From Bigelowiella natans CCMP2755 (lineage: Eukaryota; Protista; Cercozoa): 64,000 nucleotides of DNA. This document shows positions 2,001-64,000 of the stretch, one piece after another (within the stretch, counting starts at the first letter, position 1; each line of letters starts with the position of its first letter). The notes beneath the pieces are model-generated. The model saw nothing but the letters and a program-made list of their open reading frames with translations, was not told where the DNA came from and ran no database searches. The position numbers were made by a program, and so were the translations under genes. The stretch spans positions 1-64,000 of the forward strand of contig ADNK01003452.1 of the NCBI GenBank assembly GCA_000320545.1, written 5' to 3'.

Positions 2001-2319
2001 ACCCGAATCCAACACATTGAGCGCCTAGCGGAAGTATATTTTCTGGTGTGCCCCCCCCCCTCTACCTCCAGGCTATTGGCTTGGGATGACAAGCCTCCAA
2101 GAGGAGCGAACAAGGATTTAGGGTTCGGAGAGTCTGCAAACGCCCTTCATTTTGTTGATAAAATCAAAATAATTCATGTCGTAGGTGAAAAACGACTCGA
2201 TCTGCCGATTGTGACGGAACCTGGGGCATTCATTCTTCATCCAGTCTTGGTGATCTCGTTGATGGGGGGAGGATGCGTGTGAATCAGCGCATTTCATGAT
2301 CATTTTGTGCATCCATTAG

Positions 2320-3300
2320 CCGTCCTGATGAAACACTTGTTTTTTTTTCTTTCTTCATGCTAGCATGGCCCAACTAGCCAACTGCTAGATTGACATGCAC
2401 ATGCATCGCTAGATCGATTTTCGATTCCGTGACAAACAATCATCCCTGTTGCAAATTGCTGCAGCTTGCTCGACTCAGTGCAAGACCTTTTCGGCTGAAA
2501 GTCTCAATTGTTCTCGTGTTTTTTCACTTGCGCGTGTCATTGTTTCCAGCTGAAGGACAACTTCACTCAGCAGCAGCCGCCTCATTCTGGCATTGCGTGG
2601 CGTGCAAACTCCAGAACTGCTTGCACGCACGGTGCACCAACTGGTCTAGCGGTCTGTCTAGCTAGCAGCCCAGTGCGCATGCAAAACACTAGCGCAGCAT
2701 TCACTGGATGGCAAGTGAGAGCACTGCGTGTCAACGACCACGTGTGAACGTCACTGCGTCACGCACCACTCGTTTGCTAGTTTGGACAATGTGTGCCCGC
2801 GCGCGCATGCTGTCGCGCAGCCAGCGGAAAACCTGGACCAATCTAGCTAGCTACGTGTAACTCACGTGCGTGTTGCTGCATGCTAGCATGTGTTTGTGCG
2901 CTGGTTGCACTGACTAGCTGAGAATGCAAGACTAGCAAACCCAGAGCACAAGAGACGCACAGACAAGTCGCGCGATTTGGTGACACAACACAGCACATTG
3001 TTGTAGTTGCATGCACTAGATGAAGCGCATGTGTGCGTACATGAACAAGGGCAGGTAAATGCATACATGCATCATAGACATCCATCACGCATGCGCATGG
3101 CGCAACAAATCTAGAAATCACAACCGCTGCCACCTTGATTTTGGAAGGGAAACGTCTATGAGTACCGCACAATGTGATTCTAGCAACTTAGTCGTTTAGC
3201 ATTGCAAATGCAAAATAAATAGCACTCTGGATACATTCTAGCACTTTTTTGCTTATTGTTCTTGATAAATGCAATACATGCTACAATGAGCAGCTTGCAA
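2320..3300. other. TpA-depleted / CTAG-rich island 1 (intergenic)
   Basis: Manual count for 2341-3000: 16 TpA, 14 of them within CTAG. No TpA in 2412-2645. TGCA/CATG are abundant and CpG is retained. Confidence 0.85.
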
Positions 3301-18799: not shown

Positions 18800-20300
18800 A
18801 CTACTTGATGACGCAAGCTAAGTAGCTAGGTAGCCCGCTGGTATAATGATGGAATTGGCCGCGCATGAATATGTGATGTCTTCATATACATGCTGGTTGT
18901 TGTCACATTGATACGATCAGCTACGATGCGACGCTAACTAACGCAAACCCTAACAATGGCGCAGTGTTCTGTTCGATAAGGTGTTGTTTTGACGGCGCTA
19001 GGAGTAAGCTAGCTAGCTGCGACGTACATTGCATCATGCATTTACACAATAGCTGCTAGCATGCTATTATTTTGTAGCTAAAAGATGTATAGAAGCATCG
19101 ATCTACGTCGTACTAGCTGCGCCTTGCTAGCCTGGTTAAGCTAGCAAGGCTAGCTAGCTAAAAGGACACAATGCACTAGCTACTAACTAGCTAGCTAGCT
19201 AGAGGCAGCACATCTAGACATGCAAGAGCTAGAAGTCAACTGCCAGCAATGATAGCACAGTCAACATGCTAGCATGCAGTGCAATGACCACATGCTAGCA
19301 TGTCAGATCGACACAGCGCATGCATGCATGTCCATCATTGTTCCACTACTAGCTAGCCGCCAGACTGTAGCTGTCTTGCAAAGCATGTGCAATGTGCTAG
19401 AATGAGCCATTCTAGCATTCCTCAGCTTCATTGCGACTGTCACAGTGCACAACTAGACAGCTAACGCCGGACGCACAGCAGTCTAGCAGTGTATTCACAT
19501 GCATGCCTAGCTAGATGCTAGCTAGCATGCCAACGAACATGTTTCGACCACGCAAGCTAGCAAGGTCAGAAGGCTTTGCTAGTTCAGTAAATTGAGGTTT
19601 GCAAAACTGTTGTTCCAGAAGCCTGCGCTAGCTCGCTAGCCACAGCAGATGTCTACTTGCTAGCTAGCTGTGTGCATCGCATGCATGACGACAAGCACGT
19701 CTCATTGCCGTGCATGCGCACGGTGCACGGCAATGACTGTGAACGTCGATTGCATGAACGCCCGCGTCGAACAATGAGAAAAAGTTAGTGAATGTGCACT
19801 TGCAATTTTGCGCTGCATTAGTCATTTGTTTTGTTGCGTGTGCATGATCTAGTTGTTGCTGGCACGGCAGGTTCATCGTGCGTTGCACACAGCGTGCATG
19901 TCTGGATGTGAATCATCAATCACCCATCACTAGATCTGCAGATCATTGCATGCTGCGAGCGAGTGCTTGACAGAGTGCATGCAACGCACGCTAGGACGGC
20001 CTCTATCTGTGCGTGATTAAACACCTTCATGCACCTCATTTATGCAAGCCTGTTTAGCTGTGCAATGACGCACAACACACAAATAACTGTGACACTGTGA
20101 TAAAACGAAGTCGACTAACACGTGATGAGAAGGAACCACGAACTACTGCGCGAAATGCACGACATTCCAGACCGAAACAACATGCATTTGATTGCATGAA
20201 ACACACAACTGCTACATCGATCATAGTGGAAACCAAAAAGATTCAACGTTAGCGTTGCAGCCGCTGCATTGCATAGCTACACAAGGATGACCATTGAACA
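18800..20300. other. TpA-depleted / CTAG-rich island 2 (between convergent genes)
   Basis: About 28 CTAG in 19141-19680, many as GCTAGCTAGC runs. Non-CTAG TpA is rare in 19200-20000. Confidence 0.85.
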
Positions 20301-52419: not shown

Positions 52420-53572
52420 TGCCATGCATGCCACTGTCGTGCACACTATGTGCATCGTGTCATGTTGAAAACCTAAACGTGCGGTCATTGTCTAGCAGAT
52501 GAGGGTAGACAAAATGCTTCATCTTTTATCACACTCCCATGTCTACTTCGAACATCCATCTTCCTCATGTCTCCGTGGTGGAAAAAGTGACAACAGTTTG
52601 AGCCCCCATGTGAGAATGCACAACTCGGTCAAACCCGGTGACACTTGTCTGCAGCGCAAAACTAGAAAAGGCGAGTTGTGCGCGTGCGCGCAGCGTTACT
52701 AATTGATGAATGTGATCACTTATTAACACATCTGCAGTTTGGCCGAGCGTCAAAATGCAATTTTTGACCGAGAAACAACCATCTGCAACAACGTGTCATT
52801 TTCGAAGGCCAAACCGCTGTTTTTGCGACAACGTGAGAACTTTGGCAAGAATTGCAAGCAATGTGCAGCGCTGCAGCAAGCAGTGTTTTGAACACGCAAG
52901 CGTGTGCGCACACGCCAACTGCGTGCACACGAAAATTCCCAGCTGCGTGCGAACACACCTTGCTTTCTCACTGCTGCGCGCTGAAGCTTCAAATCGCTTT
53001 CAAAAGCTCTCGCTTGCTCAAACACAAAGTTCACACTGGCTTACAGGTTTGACCGAGCTGTGTGCATGTGTCAGGTTGAGTGCGCTGCTATGTGCCACGA
53101 CCGTGCACGCGCGCAAGGTGGTGCTGTGTGCAATTGGTGTGGATTTTGCTTGTTGTTGGGATTCGACACATCGATTGCGTTGTGCGCCACAAAACCAGCA
53201 AAGCAGGATGATGGACAAGCAACGTGTTGCATCACATTGCTGCGTCCGTTGCTAGGTTGTCAGGCAGCACGATGCCATCAACACAGGTGCCGCGTGCGCT
53301 GCGTGCAAGAACCTGAGAGTGTGTGCGCTCACTCACCACGTGCCAGCACGCTGCATGCATGCCTCGATCAGAGTGTGCACCAATCTAGCTAGCTAGCAAT
53401 CTCAGTGTTGCACGTGACACAGCATGCCAGCATGCTGGCATGCTTGCACAGCTTTGATCACACGATGCATCACGTGGGCTTGCTTGGTGAGCTTGTCCCT
53501 CCGCTGCCTGCATTGTCCACACCTGCAACCAGCTAGCTGAACCCACCACCACACCAGCATGCGATGCCAGCA
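52420..53572. other. TpA-depleted island 4, left part
   Basis: 52741-53572 (832 bp): 7 TpA, 5 of them in CTAG. CpG is abundant. Confidence 0.85.
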
Positions 53573-53898
53573 TGTAGCGCGTACCACTACGCGGGCACAA
53601 GTCACGTGCGACAACAAAGGGGTTGTCGCGGATATAGAATATAGATAACGTAGATATTAATACAGCATAGGCACGTGGGTTCCGGCGGGACTCATGGCAG
53701 CACACCGGAAGTGTGCTGCCCCACGTGCGGCGGCATTCGCGAAAGCTTCGCGAATGATTACGCAGTGCACGATTTAATAAAAATATAATCTTTAATAAAA
53801 ATAAACACAACTCTTCAAAAGGAAGCAAACGTGCCTTTCCCCCCCCCTGCCTACTTGTGCACGTAGCGCCTCGGCCTGTGAACACCTTACGCGCAACA
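53573..53898 (+). repeat. 5' LTR (326 bp)
   Basis: TGTAGCGCGTA...TACGCGCAACA (10/11 terminal inverted repeat), AATAAA signals at ~53775-53805, identical to the 3' LTR by eye. Confidence 0.97.
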
Positions 53899-53903
53899 AC
53901 CTT

Positions 53904-53920
53904 TGGCTTCCACACACGGG
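53904..53920 (+). promoter_or_regulatory. Primer-binding site (tRNA 3'-end complement)
   Basis: TGGCTTCCACACACGGG begins with TGG (complement of CCA), 5 nt after the 5' LTR. The tRNA identity is not established; it would end ...GUGGAAG-CCA, resembling Glu/Asp-type acceptor ends. Confidence 0.7.
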
Positions 53921-53937
53921 AAACGATTTGACTAACA

Positions 53938-54543
53938 ATGTCACAGCAGCTAGAAGAACAGCAGGACTTTGGCTCGCAGGCCGTGCAAGGGCACGAGCAG
54001 AAACAGGAAAGGAAGGGCGATACGGACGCTAAGGAAGGAGGAGGAACACCTCCACAGGCACCGCCGGGACCAGCACCCGGGATTAAGAAAGCAGATGCAG
54101 CAGCAGAGGCACTGGAGAACTTCTACGAGGCGGACGACGAGGACGTGGCCGCCGAAAGCAAGAAGGTCGTAATGGCATTACGAGCCTTGCGACCCAGGGC
54201 GAGCAACTACGCCAAACTGAAAGTATCGATAGAATACAAGTATCAGACACATGATGTTTGGGCAGCTATCATGCAGGACATCATGGATTACGAAGCAGAC
54301 TTACCTCCAGAGTGGGCAGCTTTGTTTAGGAACGACGGGGGTCTGGGCGCCTCGCGGGGGACGACCCAGAGCACCGTCAAGCAGCAGCAGCCGGTACAGC
54401 GGAACACCCAGTTCATGTCTGTTAAAACAGCACCGGTTATGATAACGAAATACAACGGGAAAAGAGGTGAGGCAAGGAGGTGGTGGAAGAACGCTAGGAG
54501 TATACTCTGCGACTTTACCACGTTGCGGATACTGCTCACGTAA
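53938..54543 (+). CDS. gag: Gag N-terminal ORF (201 aa), capsid apparently truncated
   Basis: ATG lies 18 nt after the PBS. The ORF ends shortly after the capsid-start-like motif ITKYNGKRGEARRWW. Confidence 0.75.
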   Translation: MSQQLEEQQDFGSQAVQGHEQKQERKGDTDAKEGGGTPPQAPPGPAPGIKKADAAAEALENFYEADDEDVAAESKKVVMALRALRPRASNYAKLKVSIEYKYQTHDVWAAIMQDIMDYEADLPPEWAALFRNDGGLGASRGTTQSTVKQQQPVQRNTQFMSVKTAPVMITKYNGKRGEARRWWKNARSILCDFTTLRILLT

Positions 54544-56422
54544 AGGGAAACACACCGCTAAAGACTGCAGAGACAGGAAAGAAGGACGACCCAGGATGAC
54601 GATCAGGCAGCTCAACGAACACTACGAGAAGTTAAAGAGAAAGAAAGGCAGAGGACAAGGATATAACAACAGCAAATGGCAAGGCAGCAACAACGGGAAG
54701 AACAATAAATATAAGAACAAAAAGCAGAACAGTATCAATGCTATACAGCAGCAGATAAACGGAATATTAGATCACCTTAAGCAGGCGCCGACGAAGACAG
54801 CAGTACCAGCAACGCAGGACCAAGACAAGCCCATGACCCTAGACGACATAAAGAACTTAGGAGTATGCAACATTAATGACGAAGACGCTAACAGGACTAT
54901 CAAAGTTGCTATGACCAAGGTTAAAGTTAAAGACAGCTACGGAGACTACAAGAAACTACCTGCCCTTTGGGATAGTGGCAGCATGCCGAAGTCCTTCATA
55001 AGCCTAAGCACAGTAAGAAGGTTAGGACTATTGGATCAAGTGACTAAGAAAGAACGTAAATATGCTCAAGCAGACGGAAGCTCTTCCATGAAGACCGTCG
55101 GTGAGCTAATGCTAAAGCTACAGATACCTGGCAGCGACGCGGAGACCCAAATCAAGACCCGAGTAGCCATGACTTTATCCATGGAACTACTCCTCGGACA
55201 GGATGCCCTAGAAAAATTAGGGGGGATCATATCATTCTACAATCACAAGATATACTTTGCTAAGTTGCCAAAGAAGTCAGGCAGGACCATCAGCCAGAAC
55301 ATGATACGGCTTGACGAGTGGACCTCTGAGTCAAGCGTTAATGCGTTAGAGTTTATGGACCTAGCGGACAACAAGCTACCTACACCTACCGAGCTACGGA
55401 AGAAGAACCCCGGCAAGACCATCCGACAGATAACGGAGCTACTGGACAAGACCCCCCCAGCTGATGATTGGGATATCGACAAAGGCAAAAAGTACATTAA
55501 TAAAATATTAAACGAGAAGTACTCTGACATCACCAAGCCGACGACGAAGCCCTCCAGCAAGCTTACCCCAGTAAAGATCGAGCTAAAGAAGGGATACGAA
55601 GAGTGCATCATCAATGACCCAAAACATAGGCGACCGGAAGCGGACTGGGAAAAGATAGAGTGGCAGATCAATGAATGGGCAAAGGAAGGGAAGATAGAGC
55701 CAAGCAACTCACCATGGAACGTGAGACATGTGCTAGCTAAGAAACCTACTTACCCTTTCTTCCGCCTGGCGCACAACTTCATCCGCCACAACCGAGTAAT
55801 AAAGAGGATCCAGACACCTACACCAAGGATAGATGACGTTATTGAACACGTCATAGGATACAAATACTACTCTTCCCTAGATAAAAATGAATCATACATG
55901 CAGACACCCATCCACAAAACCTCCCGCCCCATTACCGCGTTCTCCAGCAGGCACAGGAAGTGGCACTTCGTCGTATTCCCTTACGGCCTAAGCATATCAG
56001 GGGATGCGTTCAGTAGTCAGAACTACAGGGCATACACACATGATGGGATGGCGTCTGTGTTGTGGGTGTTTGTGTTTGTGTATGTGGATGATGACATAAT
56101 ATGTACCAACACAGTCGTCGCTCAGATCTTCCTCCTGGAAAATATATTTATTAGGTTTGCACACTTCGGTTTTACTATTAGACTGCAGAAGTGTACATTC
56201 CTAGCTACAAGAATCAAGTGGTGTGGATATTACCTGGAGCAAGGCCGCATCACCCCAAACCCCGAGAAAGTAGCAGCACTACAGCAAGCCCCTAAACCTA
56301 AGAATGCAAAGGAGTTAAAGCATTCTTGCAGACTGCAGCTTGGATACTACGTAGGTTCTCCCCTACCTACGCTAGGACTGCAGCTGCTTTTACTACTGCT
56401 TACCGGAAGGAGAACTCTGTAG
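54467..56422 (+). CDS. pol: Gag zinc knuckle + aspartic protease + reverse transcriptase
   Basis: CGYCSRKGKHTAKDC (CX2CX5HX4C), ALWDSGS...LLLGQDAL (protease), IEPSNSPWN, SLDKNESYMQ, FPYGL, YVDD, LQKCTF (RT). The frame is lost at ~56317-56320. Confidence 0.93.
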   Translation: MRQGGGGRTLGVYSATLPRCGYCSRKGKHTAKDCRDRKEGRPRMTIRQLNEHYEKLKRKKGRGQGYNNSKWQGSNNGKNNKYKNKKQNSINAIQQQINGILDHLKQAPTKTAVPATQDQDKPMTLDDIKNLGVCNINDEDANRTIKVAMTKVKVKDSYGDYKKLPALWDSGSMPKSFISLSTVRRLGLLDQVTKKERKYAQADGSSSMKTVGELMLKLQIPGSDAETQIKTRVAMTLSMELLLGQDALEKLGGIISFYNHKIYFAKLPKKSGRTISQNMIRLDEWTSESSVNALEFMDLADNKLPTPTELRKKNPGKTIRQITELLDKTPPADDWDIDKGKKYINKILNEKYSDITKPTTKPSSKLTPVKIELKKGYEECIINDPKHRRPEADWEKIEWQINEWAKEGKIEPSNSPWNVRHVLAKKPTYPFFRLAHNFIRHNRVIKRIQTPTPRIDDVIEHVIGYKYYSSLDKNESYMQTPIHKTSRPITAFSSRHRKWHFVVFPYGLSISGDAFSSQNYRAYTHDGMASVLWVFVFVYVDDDIICTNTVVAQIFLLENIFIRFAHFGFTIRLQKCTFLATRIKWCGYYLEQGRITPNPEKVAALQQAPKPKNAKELKHSCRLQLGYYVGSPLPTLGLQLLLLLLTGRRTL

Positions 56423-58389
56423 GCCTCAGCTTCGCTAAGGTGTGGGCCAAGGCTGGCCTTGATGCCCACTTCGATAACCTAATAAAGTTATGCAGCAACA
56501 CCCTATTGAATGCTAAGCTAGACACTACTAGACCAGCTACCCTATGGACAGACTGGTCTAAGCTAGGTATGGCTGCTGTACTTACCCAAGACCAGCAGAT
56601 CATACGGGTGTGGGGCAGGGCCTGCACAGCAGCTGAGGCCAAGTACAGCCCTACAAAAGGAGAGTATAAAGCCATGACTGAGGCGCAGAGGAAACTAAGA
56701 CACTACCTGCTGTCGGTGCCCAGCTTCACCTTAATGACTGACCACAAGCCCCTCCTAGGCATCGACCGCAAGCTCGAAGCGCCTAACGATGAGTATGCAG
56801 CTATGAGGGCGGACACGGAAGAGTTTAGGGACAAGAGGACAGTGGTCTACGCACCAGGAGACAAGCAGCTTGCTGACTATTTCAGCAGGCTGTTCGAAAA
56901 GAAAGTCCCTACCCAGGTCACCCCTATGGTTAACGCGATTACCTTCGAGGACGGCGACTTCCTGCCTGAGCCAGAGGAGCTCCAGCACCTTCAAGAACAC
57001 CTGGATAAATACAAACACAAGCATGAGGTACTTAGTGATAGGATATATGTATACACTAATAATGTTAGGCGTACCTACGTGCCACGGCGGACCAGGGGAG
57101 CCCTTCTCTTTACCGCCCATGGACCTGCACACGTAGGAGAAAACCATATCACTGCTCTACTCTACCATTACTACTGGCCCTACAAGCTAAAAGAGATAAG
57201 GACATACCTGCGTGGCTGCAGGTGCTCCAGCTTGAAGGCGGCAGGTGTCGCCACCAAGGAGTCCAGCAAGAGCCGTGCATCTAAGAAAATCAAAGCAAGG
57301 AACTTCTTAGATATCGTGCAAATTGATGTTTATAAGTACGATGGCTATCACTACCTTACCTTCGTTGATGTGGCCACTGGAAAGTGCTGGGTTAAAAAGA
57401 TTATCAAGGTCAACGTTGCTAAGAAGAACAAAGGCTTATATAAGCAGAGGCTTACTAACTGCTACCGTACCTGGGAGTCTGAGCTCCAGGCTATCCCTGA
57501 TGAAGTTAGCATAAACAAGATACCAAAGAAGTTACATGTGGATAATGAGACCTCTCTTCTACAGCTACCACACCCTAATATTGATGCCTCACCTGTATAC
57601 TATGCCCAGTCCAACTCCAAGGTAGAGCGACTCCACCGCACCTTGGCCAACCTAAGCAGGATAAATAGCACCACACCAGACAAGATACAAGGGTTAGTAA
57701 ACGACACCTTCACGTCTGGGGGAGGTATCAAGGATAAGGAGAGGGAAGAAGGCGACGACAACGACGACGATACCGAGAGCGAAGACGAGAAGGTCCCGTA
57801 CGATGGCCGAGTTCTAAAGGAAGGACAGTATGTTAGGGCCAAGGTAAATCTGAGATCGAGAAATAAACAAGACCCCTTCTGGGGTGGCGTTGCAAAGGTT
57901 ACCGAGAGGAAGGGGAGGAAGCAGTACTACATCTATGATGGGAACAGGGTCACCTTGCGCCACATCAGTCACCTAAAGAATTATGATATCGGTGAGAAGC
58001 TCCTAGAGGATGTTAAAGTAAACCCTACTGTGTGGGAGCGAGCCATGCCTTGTTTAGGACCCCGACCTAAGTTCGATGTGGAATATGGAAACAATAAGGT
58101 CAGGGTGAACGACGATTGGCGCATGAAGATTGTCTATCTAGGCTACCCTGGATTACGAAATATGGAGAGGGTAGCTATGAAAATAAAGGACGGAAAATAT
58201 CAGCTACTCTACCTAGCTGTTCCCGACTTACCCTTTGAGCACTGGTATAAGGTCCTGGGGGACCTTGATGCAGAGGGCTGGTATGGACACGAACCTAAGG
58301 ACGAAGGTGAGTTCTGGGTAAGCGACAAAGGAGATAAGGTTAGAGAGGAATCTATTACCTGGTGGTTGGTGAAGTTCCGAAAGCGATGA
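56326..58389 (+). CDS. pol: RT thumb/RNase H + integrase + GPY/F-like module + C-terminal MTase-like extension
   Basis: LWTDWS...YSPTKGEY...MTDHKPL...LADYFSR (RNase H); HGPAH...CRC zinc-binding motif; IDV / VDNE / KVER (DDE); KQDPFWGG...RHISHLK (GPY/F-SH3-like); about 135 additional aa before the stop. Confidence 0.93.
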   Translation: MQTAAWILRRFSPTYARTAAAFTTAYRKENSVGLSFAKVWAKAGLDAHFDNLIKLCSNTLLNAKLDTTRPATLWTDWSKLGMAAVLTQDQQIIRVWGRACTAAEAKYSPTKGEYKAMTEAQRKLRHYLLSVPSFTLMTDHKPLLGIDRKLEAPNDEYAAMRADTEEFRDKRTVVYAPGDKQLADYFSRLFEKKVPTQVTPMVNAITFEDGDFLPEPEELQHLQEHLDKYKHKHEVLSDRIYVYTNNVRRTYVPRRTRGALLFTAHGPAHVGENHITALLYHYYWPYKLKEIRTYLRGCRCSSLKAAGVATKESSKSRASKKIKARNFLDIVQIDVYKYDGYHYLTFVDVATGKCWVKKIIKVNVAKKNKGLYKQRLTNCYRTWESELQAIPDEVSINKIPKKLHVDNETSLLQLPHPNIDASPVYYAQSNSKVERLHRTLANLSRINSTTPDKIQGLVNDTFTSGGGIKDKEREEGDDNDDDTESEDEKVPYDGRVLKEGQYVRAKVNLRSRNKQDPFWGGVAKVTERKGRKQYYIYDGNRVTLRHISHLKNYDIGEKLLEDVKVNPTVWERAMPCLGPRPKFDVEYGNNKVRVNDDWRMKIVYLGYPGLRNMERVAMKIKDGKYQLLYLAVPDLPFEHWYKVLGDLDAEGWYGHEPKDEGEFWVSDKGDKVREESITWWLVKFRKR

Positions 58390-58396
58390 AGGTCTA

Positions 58397-58440
58397 AGGG
58401 AATAAGGAAGGAAGGAAGGAGCAACGTGACTTGGGGGAGG
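58397..58440 (+). promoter_or_regulatory. Polypurine tract
   Basis: GGGGGAGG (58433-58440) abuts the 3' LTR and is preceded by purine-rich AAGGGAATAAGGAAGGAAGGAAGGAG. Confidence 0.85.
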
Positions 58441-58766
58441 TGTAGCGCGTACCACTACGCGGGCACAAGTCACGTGCGACAACAAAGGGGTTGTCGCGGA
58501 TATAGAATATAGATAACGTAGATATTAATACAGCATAGGCACGTGGGTTCCGGCGGGACTCATGGCAGCACACCGGAAGTGTGCTGCCCCACGTGCGGCG
58601 GCATTCGCGAAAGCTTCGCGAATGATTACGCAGTGCACGATTTAATAAAAATATAATCTTTAATAAAAATAAACACAACTCTTCAAAAGGAAGCAAACGT
58701 GCCTTTCCCCCCCCCTGCCTACTTGTGCACGTAGCGCCTCGGCCTGTGAACACCTTACGCGCAACA
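58441..58766 (+). repeat. 3' LTR (326 bp)
   Basis: Identical to 53573-53898, including the 9-C run. Confidence 0.97.
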
Positions 58767-59270
58767 AGCACGCACACGCACGCACTGTCTAGCTGTGTCT
58801 GTGAACGACTTTGAGTGCGTGCGCATGCCAGCATGGAACGTGCCAACTCATCTGTTGTTGAAAGAACAAGTGAATGAATGAACGAACCAATTCCAATGCT
58901 TGAGTTGACAGGATCATCATCAGACGCACCAAGTCGTCGTCCATGTCCCCTGACAAAAACAACCAAAGATCGAGGGTTTGGCGTTCAAAAAATGCATCCC
59001 AATTGTTGTGTGCGTCAACGAATCGAACGAAAAAGTCGTTCACATTCATCAAACGACAGCAGTTCGCATGTGTCGTCACAGCAAATCACGTGCCTTTTCC
59101 TTCATTTTTTCAAACGTATTTTTAGCACTCTGCTGCTCTCCTCATCGCTACTCGCATGCAGGAACCCACCTCCACGTGTCATCGATCATAGCCACCTTCC
59201 ACATTTGCAATTGAAGACGACGTTGCAGCCCCTCGAAAGACACACAGAGAGCCCAGCACACTTGGATACG
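58767..59270. other. TpA-depleted island 4, right part
   Basis: 58767-59110: a single TpA, within CTAG. Confidence 0.85.
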
Positions 59271-60134
59271 TAGGACATTCCTTTCATTTTAGTGAGGAAA
59301 CGAGCAAGTCTGCAGAGCAGAAATCTGGAAAGCAGAAAGGCGTACTCGTCTTTCTTCACGGTATGGATGGTGCATTAATATTTGAATGTTGTTATCATCA
59401 TGACCGGAATGTTTTTTTACAAAACATGGCTACATAGGCAGTGGAGACAATGGTCCAAACTTTCAGAAATGGGTCTACATGGCCTCCAAAGGGAAGTAAT
59501 GTAGCCTCTAAAAACCACATCATTGTGAATCATTTCGCTTGCGTACACTTTAGTGATTTCCCTTTGGAAAGGCTGTCAAATATTCTATCCCATAAGTTTG
59601 TCACCCATAATCTTGTTGGATTAGATTTGAAAGCACGCTCGCTAACAATGGCATAGCTGTTGTGTATCCTTCTGCAAAATGTATTCCTTATACTCTCGCA
59701 GGTCAAGTTCAATGTTATACAACATTGCTCCTTATCTGTCCTGTCTTCCTCCTTTATAGCAATCAATGACATATCTGTAGATCCTTTTGCAGAATATTTT
59801 GTGTTGTGGGTTATTCCAAAATATTTTATCGTTCCTCTAATTGCAGCCGGGATGAAGATGTCAGTATGGCATGATAGGTAGTAGTAGAGTTTGCAAATAG
59901 CACGCACTAGTCTTGATAAATTGTGATGGTGGTGAACAAATGATTTCAATCATGATATCTATAGCGGTTGATTGTGTTCATCCTCATCATCGCCATCATC
60001 ACTTAGAACGGGTTTGGGACCGAAGTTTCCAGAAGATACAGAAGGCATACGCAATTCTCTAGAAAGTCTCGACAAGAACATTCTGAATCCCCTAGCAACC
60101 AAAGGTACTACTCCCCAATATACCACACGCACAC

Positions 60135-60185
<51 letters not shown>

Positions 60186-60845
60186 ATCCATATGTGTGTG
60201 TGTGTGTGTGTGTGTGTTGTCTGTTTTCTTTATCGGTACCTTACATGCTGCTAATAGAAGTAGTATTTGCTACCAACACATTCTTGGATTGCTCATTCAC
60301 CTTGTCTTTATAAGTAATTAATAACTCATATTTGAAGAATTACCGGTTGTGGTCGGTGGATTCTCACAAGGTTAGTATTATGCATATTTCAATTTTTTTT
60401 GCATCTTTCAGTAAAAGAAATCTAAGCTAAAATTGAATTCCCTACTTTGGCAATACATTCTTCTTATACCCATTTTACTATAAGGTGGTCATATGGCAAT
60501 GCACGTTGCTCTCAACGATTGTTCCAACAGCAACTATAATAGCACCGGTAGTTGTAGTAAAAAGGACAACAACAGTAGCACCAGCAGCAGCAAGTTGGAA
60601 AGCGGCAACCCTAGAAAGAATATCCAATCCTGGTATGTCTGGGGTTCTAAATAATCTACGCCACAGTGCACACATGTGATACTTAAATGGTGAGATGATG
60701 ATGATGATCAGAAGCTGCAAATGTTTTCCTACTACTTCCTAGCATTAAAGGTTGTTTCGTCATGTCATCGTACCTCCACGACGACTCAAACATCTACAAA
60801 ATCTTCTCAAACGAAAACATATTGCCAGGTCTCTCTCTCTTTATT

Positions 60846-60884
<39 letters not shown>

Positions 60885-61440
60885 TAATGGTGACTTGATG
60901 AGGCCTGCTGTAAAGGGATGGGTATCTTCTGTGGTCGATCCTTTACTACTACTACTAAATAATGTGGATAGATAATAATGTCTTTTGTGCTCGATCCTTT
61001 ACTACTACTACTAAATAATGTGGATAGATAATGTCTTCTGTGGTCGATCCTTTACTACTAAATGATGTGTATACGATACCCCCTTTGCACATTAAGACGC
61101 TACTGCTGCTACTACTGCAGCTCAAGTTGTATTGACATCATCATTGTCATCATCATCATCGTCATCATCATTATCGTCGTCTTATTACATCTCTACTGGT
61201 CTACCATACTTACACAGAAGTCAAGCTTCCACTTCTAATGACACATGGAACGGTATAACATAGAAGTGTTCGTATAATATCGATGAAGGCAAGAACGGAT
61301 TTATAGAATAAAGGAAGAGGGAGGATAATATATTTAGATCTGTGAAGCTCGTTATTTTCACGAGCACAGAAATTCTACGGAATGAAATTGAGGATTTGGT
61401 TTCTCCGCATTGTTCATTTTTGGAAATATCTAACAATTCA
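58789..61440 (-). CDS. Possible multi-exon gene of unknown function whose 3' exons enter island 4
   Basis: AG/GT-bounded segments LFRTPDIPGLDILSR, YAIVSERAFKSNPTRLWVTNLWDRIFDSLSKG, and NDFFVRFVDAHNNWDAFFERQTLDLWLFLSGDMDDDL|GT. The model is incomplete. Confidence 0.35.
60925..61072. repeat. Imperfect tandem repeat, ~53-56 bp unit x ~2.7
   Basis: TCTT(C/T)TGTG(G/C)TCGATCCTTT(ACT)nAAAT(A/G)ATGTG occurs three times head-to-tail. Confidence 0.85.
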
Positions 61441-61746
61441 GCGTGATAGGATGATTTCGAGCAAATGGGGTGAAAAAACGGCGAAGAAACTCAAGGATGT
61501 TGGGTAGTAGTAATTGCACCTCCTCTGTTTTTTATTTTGTTTATAAAAACATCGATATCGACTTTCATTGATACCTCATATAATAAAGACCCCTATGTTA
61601 TTTTTAGGTTGGACGTGCGATTTAAATTAATTGATGGTATAACCTCCATCCAACTCGTAGAATAACGAGAACAATCTTTGAAATGGGATAGCCATTTATG
61701 TAACAGTCGAAATTGTTTACCTACAAGGGAATAAAACGTTTTCTGT

Positions 61747-61790
<44 letters not shown>

Positions 61791-61919
61791 GTGTGTGTGT
61801 GTGTTCTGAACAACATCACGACATGTCATCGACGATTGTCCGATGACCGTATCTTTTCTACTCAACGTAAGAGGGCGAGGGAGAAGGAGGGAAGTGTCCA
61901 CTTTTCACATTTCTCTCGT

Positions 61920-63360
61920 GCTTCATTGTTTGGTGTTGCAGGCACGGAGCATGCTTTGTGCCCGAGTTCCCTTGATGAAGTGCTCAATTTCGTATTAGAT
62001 TCGTTCAGTATGTGATTGCTCAGCTTGTCACTCTAGCACTGCTAGACTGCAACGTGCGGACAACCAAATGCCCATCATCTTCTGCTAGTTCAGCTGGTTC
62101 AGCACGCCTAGCATCATGACTGACCGCATGTTCGCAATGGGTTCATCTGCACCTAGCATCACCAGATCATGATGGACTGCATTGCCAACACCATGATCAT
62201 GCTGGCAACCAGCATCACACATTGATTGCACGTTTTCAACTCTTTCAAGACATTGCCTTTCCCACAACGTGCTGGCATGGAAAATCAAAGCAGCGCGCAT
62301 AGCCTTCGGCACGTGTCAAACAATGATGATCTCGTGCCTGCTGGCCTGGCTAGCCAGCTAGCTGGCCACAGCAGCCACACCGCACGTTGCGTTGAATTGC
62401 GAAAGGTCGAACGTGCTGAACAAAGCTGTGAGTGCGATGTTTTTGCAATGACAATCACCAAATCAGCGCGCACACTCTGGCACTGCTGGACTGGTGCACG
62501 TCTGGCACGCACCATCAAGCTGGACCACACGACAACTTTGAGCACAAGGAAGTTTTGCCAGTTTGTGCAGACTCTCAATTGGCAAGAACTGGAGAAGGAT
62601 CGAAAACTGGAAAAGGTTGCACGCTGCGACTCCAAGTGAAGCCCCTTCTCGCGCACCACAAGCCGTTCCAGCGTTGTGTCCACCACACACCACCAGACCG
62701 CCACACTCCGTGGCACTTGGGTGTCGCAGTTTGGAGAGCACCTGCAGAGGTGTGGAGGTGCTGGCATGGCTCCAAGGCTCCTCGTTCGCGTCAGAGTGAC
62801 ACGTGGCACTCTGAAGGGGACAAATCACTGTCAACAAGACCGTTCGAAACCTTGCAATGCAGCACGTGCACCAGCGCAGCACCAGTTGCTCTTGGCTTGC
62901 ACTTTGTTCGTTCGTTCTTTTGGTCAATTGCTCACTCGCTTGGCTTTTTCCCAACTCCCAAAAAGCTCCAGGTTCAAGAAAGGTTCAACAAGGTTCGTGT
63001 CCACATTGAAGTTCCAACGGGCACTAGCATCACAACCAACTCGATGCACCTCCACTGGATTGGAAAGCGTGCTAGCGGTGCAGCATGCAGGTGAGTGAAA
63101 ACAGGTCGAGGGTCCTCCATCGCTGTGTCTGAAATCCTGTTCAAGTTGATTCAGTTGCTGCCACTTGAACGACGAAATTGAGATGATGAGGTTGGTTGTG
63201 GCAGCAGACATTTGATGCACACCACTGGGCAACCGACAACTCTAAGACATTTCAGACTCAAAGACAATCTTTGTGTGCTATGCAAGGCAACTTCGTCACT
63301 GTCAAGTCGCATGTCTGAAATGCAATGTCAAAATTCATGGAATCTCATGCACATCACATC
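61920..63360. other. TpA-depleted island 5 (overlaps exons)
   Basis: 62041-63240: 9 TpA, 8 of them in CTAG. Zero TpA in 62361-63024 (664 bp). Confidence 0.9.
62513..63163 (-). pseudogene. Two in-phase exons of a host gene or pseudogene with no Tyr and excess Cys/His
   Basis: Exon ~63163-62936 (…FGSWEKAKR|GTGAG), intron 62935-62811 (…TTCAG), exon 62810-62513 (SATCHSDANEEPW…VVQLD|GTGCGT). The gene probably extends past the right edge of the window. Confidence 0.55.
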
Positions 63361-63510
63361 CCAAAATATTTTTCGGCATATTACCAAAGCTGAAGAAGAG
63401 AGCAACGAGAGAGAATGAGAAAAAAGAGAGAGAAAGAGGAAAAAGAGGGACATATATAAGTACATGTACATGTATATACACACATACACACAAATACATG
63501 TACGTACACA

Positions 63511-63554
<44 letters not shown>

Positions 63555-64000
63555 AAGAGAAAGAGAAAGAGAAAGAGAAAGAGAAAGAGAGAGAGAGAGG
63601 TCGAGCAAACATGGGTGAGAGAGAAAATAAAAAATCGTAAGGGACAACATGGAATAAGTCCGAAATGTTGTCAGTCTCTTTATGTGTCTATTCTTTCAGA
63701 ATTGTGTCAAAAGTGGTTGAAAATGAACACAAATTGCCTACGTTTGTAAGATTCTTGGTACTTGATTATGTCACTTATTGGCAGCTGCCACCATTCTTCA
63801 TCGTTCACTTATTTCATTTACCTGCTGCCCCTTCCTTGCCTGCTGCCACAAAACCCAATAAAAAGTGGTAATAATTTCAGGGGTAGACACAGTCCCTTTT
63901 AATGCAATAAATCATTACTTGCTGAAAACCGAGCGACAACTTTCTTCGCATCCATCAATCAGAAAGTAGCACATGAACGAGGAGGTAAGCAACGTGGAGG

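Follow-up and report, generated by a model that had tools for sequence, protein, structure and literature searches.

Did a retrotransposon that lies in DNA nearly devoid of the dinucleotide TpA strip its own surroundings, or did it land where TpA had already been lost, and do its relatives land in such places as well? The question is raised by a stretch of 64,000 nt from the genome of the cercozoan Bigelowiella natans CCMP2755 (GenBank assembly GCA_000320545.1, contig ADNK01003452.1, positions 1 to 64,000 of the forward strand; this whole stretch is called the window here), in which a retrotransposon with long terminal repeats (LTRs) and genes in Ty3/gypsy order occupies positions 53573-58766 on the + strand within an island of TpA-poor sequence. 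Our reading, which we hold to be probable, is that this element is a recently inserted, dead-on-arrival copy of a young and active family, that it entered a pre-existing hypermutated island of 1.5 kb and that the family integrates preferentially into such islands. The islands and the mutational process behind them are already known (Mettrop et al., bioRxiv 10.64898/2026.01.13.699255); what appears to be new relative to that work is that an active Ty3/gypsy family homes to TpA-erased islands, itself without TpA damage.

TpA-erased islands and the preference of the family for them

To the left of the element we counted seven TpA in 832 bp, five of them in CTAG, and to the right a single TpA in 345 bp, also in CTAG; the totals agree exactly with those given in a preliminary description of the locus made from the sequence alone. 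The left half of the island (52545-53572) has 12 TpA in 1028 bp (six in CTAG) where ∼50 are expected (P = 1e-10), with an excess of TG + CA, and the right half (58771-59266) has five TpA in 500 bp against an expectation of ∼29 (P = 5e-8); both P values are from the Poisson distribution, with the TpA level of the whole window as reference. Without the element, the two halves make up a single island of 1524 bp, in which the observed/expected ratio (o/e) is 0.19 for TpA and 1.73 for TG + CA.

A mutation-accumulation experiment has measured TpA→TpG/CpA hypermutation in B. natans: within one integrated giant-virus region and one virophage region, ∼6e-7 mutations arose per site and generation, each of them at a TpA and nearly all of the A/T→G/C type (10.64898/2026.01.13.699255). 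From the figures of that preprint (211 mutations, 6169 TpA, 3132 generations) we computed a rate of ∼1.1e-5 per TpA per generation. Its criteria for TpA-hypermutated DNA are a Rho_TpA of ≤0.43, the genome-wide 5% cut-off, and a Rho_CpA+TpG of ≥1.52. The authors propose TpA hypermutation as a defence against invading DNA and consider that activity of transposable elements (TEs) might switch it on; LTR retrotransposons, CTAG and integration sites are not mentioned. In our window, 5% of the bins are at or below a TpA o/e of 0.43, the same quantile as the published one, and the island around the element lies within both published limits. Thus, the islands carry the published hypermutation footprint. 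The depletion had been supposed to accumulate over time and to be more than a local sequencing artefact, and the mutation-accumulation measurement bears this out.

There are three more islands in the window, at 2120-3055, 19185-20040 and 61860-63381; none of them holds an element or a solo LTR, and islands make up ∼8% of the window DNA. The island nearest to the element, 61860-63381, again has a TpA o/e of 0.19, with nine of its 18 TpA in CTAG.

The surroundings of other family members were assessed on 25 distinct 5′ flanks and 22 distinct 3′ flanks (20 of the latter were scored) from loci matched in searches. In the nearest 500 bp, TpA o/e was ≤0.43 in 20 of the 25 5′ flanks and in 12 of the 20 3′ flanks versus six of 117 window bins (binomial P against 5%: 4e-22 and 2e-11, respectively). 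Values within both published limits were found in 15/25 5′ flanks and 8/20 3′ flanks versus 5/117 window bins. Pooled over the flanks, TpA o/e is 0.27-0.30 at 0-100 bp from the junction and rises to ∼0.8 at 1.3-1.5 kb, and TG + CA mirrors this course, going from 1.6 near the junction down to 1.25. The regional enrichment amounts to 12-16-fold. A preference of the element for these domains, which the preliminary description had raised as a possibility to be checked by flank TpA o/e, is therefore visible in 60-80% of flanks versus 5% of the background.

Several points weigh against reading these figures as a targeted preference. Some 20-40% of the flanks lie outside islands. The sample comprises only 45 flanks, all on contigs C88-C429, and the background consists of one 59-kb window and the published quantile. 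Visible insertions are survivors in a culture lineage, so that selection may have shaped the sample. Finally, the motif preference of the 4-bp target-site duplications (TSDs) is weak: the commonest, TGCA, makes up 16 of 337 (4.7%), ∼3 times its frequency in islands.

The last point bears on a pure DNA-sequence preference, in which the integrase would favour a TGCA-like or TpA-free target made by hypermutation, with no chromatin cue. TGCA is indeed over-represented among TSDs relative to its share of tetramers in islands (1.46%) and outside them (0.56%), WGCA TSDs are frequent in the sample, and the first base of the TSD is T in 118 cases, A in ∼98, G in 74 and C in 47. However, TGCA is only 2.6 times richer in islands than elsewhere and 95% of the TSDs are other tetramers, which cannot yield a 12-16-fold bias. 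Nor do insertions cluster locally at CTAG scars (described below): the density of CTAG and of NNNN-CTAG-NNNN stays level over the first 640 bp beyond the junction. Because the TGCA excess is so small and the CTAG density flat, neither TSD bias nor proximity to CTAG explains the enrichment, and we regard a preference for sequence as such as quite unlikely. Nesting of the element in one repeat family was rejected too, since the flanks share no homology; an all-against-all blastn comparison of 47 flanks and the window islands gave only short low-complexity matches.

Other accounts of the islands themselves were considered and dropped. None of the 19 long open reading frames (ORFs) in islands and flanks has a viral or TE domain in Pfam, which led us to abandon both coding exons and TE or viral remnants as an explanation, although a foreign origin may have decayed past recognition. 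Two of the 19 ORFs are host-like (Na/Ca exchanger and KA1), and spliced host transcripts have exons that lie in two of the islands. Compositional or regulatory segments, as opposed to mutational decay, were set aside given the measured hypermutation (10.64898/2026.01.13.699255), and transcription-strand-biased deamination was discarded on finding TG ∼ CA both in islands and in element-oriented flanks. In one read comparison, the aligned reads over 58441-64000 had no TpA-type differences. The segment 43000-49000 has a composition unlike that of the islands and of the remaining window, with a marked CpG deficit (o/e 0.26-0.5) and no loss of TpA.

Identical 4-mers flank 92 of 413 CTAG (22%; NNNN-CTAG-NNNN, window and flanks together) versus 0.5-2% for TGCA, CATG, GATC and GCGC. 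Many island CTAGs are thus 8-bp insertion scars, that is, CTAG plus a 4-bp duplication, and not surviving TpA. TGCA was tried as an excision footprint and rejected, with 1.5% of its occurrences flanked by 4-bp repeats, like other palindromes. The CTAG starts recorded in the window are 2360, 2374, 2409, 2777, 2883, 2914, 3111, 19214-19557, 52662, 53252, 58789, 62033 and 62042.

A young family without TpA decay

The family is a very young, very active 5.7-kb LTR retrotransposon of Ty3/gypsy order. The last 29 nt of its LTR, taken as an exact match, occur 656 times in the genome, and 319 of these 3′ ends then continue into internal sequence; the family thus has ∼319 internal-bearing elements, which amount to ∼2% of the 91.4-Mb assembly, and no more than ∼18 solo LTRs. 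In a whole-genome search, 40 of 40 scored LTR matches were 100% identical. Seven full copies were taken for comparison with the window copy. Six full copies are 5716 bp long and identical at every base; L036 exceeds the other full copies by 1 nt. The canonical Gag-Pol is a single frame of 1657 aa, intact for example in L031. TSDs of 4 bp flank five of the seven copies. The flanking tetramers of the two full copies L035 (contig C265) and L037 (contig C249) do not match, being GTCA/CACA and TGTT/CGTT, which points to copies having recombined or to one TSD having undergone a point change.

Expression of the family is high: 13,527 RNA reads stop at 58688 in the 3′ LTR with poly(A) tails, and RNA depth is ∼13,500 on the LTR versus ≤16 on the neighbouring gene. 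A further 27 RNA reads, with 10 start sites, link LTR position 299 back to position 1 (58739→58441); these joins could represent the LTR-LTR junction of tandem or circular forms, or template switching.

If copies decayed in place, older members should show progressive TA→TG/CA change, which the preliminary description had hoped to use as an internal clock. No such decay was found. A 35-nt pattern from the U3 (unique 3′) part of the LTR that allows TA, CA, TG or CG at eight TpA matched 625 places, with the unmutated sequence in every match listed, and a control, in which transitions were permitted at 16 positions outside TpA, matched 625 places too. Up to three mismatches added only 35 further places. 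With these equal counts, the few extra matches and the scarcity of solo LTRs, the family has no old members; it is not a substrate of hypermutation, or not yet, and the clock therefore has nothing to read. At the rate of ∼1.1e-5, one hit would be expected per ∼18 generations over 5000 sampled TpA, and the 95% bound on exposure is ∼55-115 generations, the value of ∼115 coming from the six identical full copies.

The age of the family also enters into a further alternative, namely that integration is random, that selection removes insertions outside islands and that islands persist as safe havens of junk DNA. Only the fixed insertions of a culture lineage can be seen, the islands have no recognisable coding domains and the baseline mutation rate permits up to ∼2.5e5 generations since insertion, all of which would suit this account. 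On the other hand, islands are only ∼5-8% of the DNA, so that 12-16-fold enrichment would need >90% of the other DNA to be intolerant, yet the region consists mostly of introns and spacers. The window copy itself adjoins an expressed gene at its first exon, a location that is not obviously safe, and the near-identity of copies together with the small number of solo LTRs points to very little elapsed time. Selective survival is, in our judgement, an unlikely source of the bias.

Order of events and comparison with known systems

In DNA run X7, two contigs join the family LTR end to position 62029 (target CACT, beside a CACT-CTAG-CACT scar); this base is also the point of divergence of four other contigs. 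The LTR-62029 junction is missing from the reference, in which the 26-mer at 62029 is unique. Position 62029 lies inside the neighbouring island, already erased yet empty in the reference. As the X7 contigs join an LTR end to this position, an integration event, or a rearrangement requiring one, hit an already-erased island. Against this stands that the LTR part of the contigs behind the junction is 22 nt long and that a deletion of 58767-62028 beside the element is an alternative. Because most islands are without an element, because ∼319 elements are too few for ∼5% of the genome and because the X7 junction falls in an erased, empty island, we conclude that the island predates the insertion, as had been proposed from the flanks of the window copy.

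The opposite order would have the insertion trigger hypermutation of its flanks, with the element's own DNA protected, for example by the methyltransferase-like domain described below or by transcription. Several facts would fit: the TpA trough is centred on insertions, a rate of 1.1e-5 per TpA per generation could erase flanks within the ∼2.5e5 generations of the baseline clock, and TE activity has been suggested to turn the process on (10.64898/2026.01.13.699255). But three of the four window islands have neither an element nor a solo LTR, the family is too small to explain ∼5% of a genome of 91 Mb, the reference, in which the X7 insertion is missing, shows the island around 62029 in a fully erased state, and in the methyltransferase-like domain the catalytic motif is replaced (NPPY→GYPG). 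We judge that insertion before erasure is very unlikely.

In the course of events that we favour, host TpA→TpG/CpA hypermutation would have stripped nearly all TpA from a 1.5-kb island at a gene boundary, and the element would then have inserted into the erased island. Guidance of the integrase by some feature of island chromatin or DNA would be the most likely reason for the bias. The element may be free of hypermutation on account of its youth, or active transcribed copies may not be a substrate. Both integration as the source of the enrichment and the part of the integrase that may act as guide are inferences.

Compared with the hypermutation described by Mettrop et al. (10.64898/2026.01.13.699255), the species is the same and the flanks have the same footprint, whereas here the most active retrotransposon family is untouched, yet lies inside old products of the process. 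The most successful current invader of the B. natans genome thus bears no hypermutation trace, yet is 12-16-fold concentrated in rewritten DNA, which sets limits to the protection that the hypermutation ‘defence’ can be credited with where active retrotransposons are concerned. This points to a cue common to integration and hypermutation, or else to islands that are long-used landing pads in which older cargo has been mutated past recognition. The family also offers a directly testable system for the landing of new copies.

Targeted integration is well known among LTR retrotransposons: chromoviruses of the Ty3/gypsy group carry an integrase chromodomain and go to heterochromatin, and Ty5, Tf1 (at Pol II promoters) and Ty3 (at Pol III genes) are targeted as well. 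The B. natans family resembles chromoviruses and other targeted elements in its Ty3/gypsy order, in an extra module past the SH3-like domain of the integrase and in a strong regional bias. It differs from chromoviruses in having no chromodomain (Pfam found none, and the predicted fold is SH3-like plus methyltransferase-like). To our knowledge, a target compartment like TpA-erased islands at gene boundaries has not been described before. Ngaro retrotransposons of Cafeteria burkhardae prefer endogenous virophages (Hackl et al. 2021, PMC8547959) and likewise represent, in a marine protist, a retrotransposon family that clearly favours one compartment, made up of foreign or parasitic DNA; they use a tyrosine recombinase and enter recognisable virophages, whereas the family studied here has a DDE-integrase and enters short anonymous islands without recognisable viral or TE genes.

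The window copy, its integrase tail and the neighbouring genes

The window copy is bounded by a 5′ LTR (53573-53898, + strand) and a 3′ LTR (58441-58766, + strand; poly(A) site at ∼58688), each of 326 bp and of the form TG...CA. The two LTRs are 100% identical to each other and to all 40 scored LTRs elsewhere in the genome. Direct count gave 24 TpA in the 326 bp and none in CTAG, so that what had been said of the LTRs was confirmed throughout; over the whole element TpA o/e is 1.12, with 356 TpA. The TSD is AGCA, with its left copy at 53569-53572 and the matching four bases beyond the 3′ LTR at 58767-58770. A purine-rich tract ending GGGGGAGG adjoins the 3′ LTR at 58429-58440 (+ strand) and, from its position, is probably the polypurine tract. 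The sequence after the 5′ LTR, where a primer-binding site would lie, was not matched to a tRNA; a tRNA scan of the window found no tRNA gene, and an Rfam scan of the window found nothing.

The description of the element as unmutated holds for its LTRs only; its body is damaged, and the copy is defective despite LTRs without mutation. It is 5194 bp long versus the canonical 5716 bp. Relative to the six mutually identical copies, 521 bp are missing at 54519/54520, with loss of Gag residues ∼195-368 and a shift of frame, and 1 bp is missing at 56320, which causes a frameshift between reverse transcriptase and RNase H. There are also four substitutions: 55622 G>A, 56701 T>C (TA→CA, the only one of the four in this class), 57246 C>T (CpG→TpG) and 58044 A>C. 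These defects most likely date from the round of replication that produced the window copy.

As a result of these changes the coding region is split. In the ORF list, a truncated gag reading frame of 201 aa (53938-54543, + strand) ends just past the 521-bp deletion, as seen relative to the L031 ORF. The first part of pol (54467-56422, + strand) encodes aspartic protease and reverse transcriptase (Pfam gag-asp_proteas, E-value 1e-3; RVT_1, E-value 7e-9). The 1-bp deletion at 56320 (+ strand), seen in pairwise alignment with a canonical copy, separates this frame from the second part of pol (56326-58389, + strand), which encodes RNase H and integrase (Pfam RT_RNaseH and Integrase_H2C2), the latter with an H2C2 zinc finger, an SH3-like C-terminal domain and a terminal methyltransferase-like domain with GYPG, these last two being predicted from an AlphaFold2 model. 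The Ty3/gypsy order, protease - reverse transcriptase - RNase H - integrase, was found with Pfam both on the intact L031 ORF and on the broken frames of the window.

In the intact ORF of 1657 aa, the last ∼220 residues have no Pfam annotation, and there is no match to Pfam chromo. The C-terminal 218 aa of the element are 100% identical to several JGI Bigna1 gene models, and an exhaustive search produced 53 relatives, whereas sequence searches of the PDB gave no useful match. An AlphaFold2 model of the last 218 aa made from an alignment of 31 sequences (query plus 30 relatives) has a mean predicted local distance difference test score (pLDDT) of 93.9; the model made from the single sequence (pLDDT 35) was unusable. 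In the alignment-based model, residues 19-85 of the tail are predicted to form the SH3-like C-terminal domain of the integrase (match to prototype foamy virus integrase, Z 8.0). Residues 85-218 would form an alpha/beta domain whose best structural matches are the adenine-N6 methyltransferases PCIF1 (Z 6.9) and KsgA (Z 6.5), scores that are below the secure level. After beta-strand 4, where adenine methyltransferases carry NPPY, there is a conserved GYPG, the P and G of which are kept in ≥90% of the 31 aligned sequences. Pfam Dam (PF05869) is matched by one of the 31 relatives, at an E-value of 0.03, and the element's own protein has no Pfam match there.

DAM-LTR retrotransposons, which are reported to be highly transcribed and in which the catalytic triplet Asn-Pro-Pro is reported to be almost universal (Fernandez-Moreno et al., bioRxiv 10.64898/2026.05.21.726589), resemble the window family in that its polyprotein is predicted to end in an adenine-methyltransferase-like fold; the two seem loosely related. 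The window family differs in its conserved GYPG in place of Asn-Pro-Pro after beta-strand 4 and in barely matching Pfam Dam. Bigelowiella and Rhizaria are not mentioned in that preprint.

The tail domain may have a role in targeting. One could go further and suppose that a catalytically dead adenine-methyltransferase-like domain links the element to the host's adenine-directed hypermutation, either by reading a mark or lesion of hypermutation-prone chromatin and steering integration there, or by shielding the TpA adenines of the element itself. We think this improbable; if true, a retrotransposon would have evolved a module specifically for residing within a DNA-editing defence of its host while being immune to it.

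Next to the insertion lies a spliced host gene, here called gene A, whose first known exon (58771-59359, + strand; transcript contigs from two runs) abuts the 3′ LTR. Its transcript contigs start 20 nt inside the LTR end, reach 59359 and are spliced GT..AG to 59437; at least 11 GT..AG introns were found in total, out to ∼62264. Since spliced contigs (58747-59495) begin within the final 20 nt of the 3′ LTR, gene A has chimeric mRNAs that start in the LTR or result from read-through, and the LTR is thus seen to supply transcripts that enter a host gene. Transcript contigs also cover 61941-62264, the 3′ end of gene A, and 62525-63071, the first exon of the next gene; the island 61860-63381 accordingly spans a tail-to-head gene junction. 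The introns of the neighbouring genes and the spacer contain (TA)n runs, a 52-nt tandem duplication and long (GA)n/(GAAA)n arrays, at 60126-60202, 60826-60902, 60925-61032 and 63400-63600.

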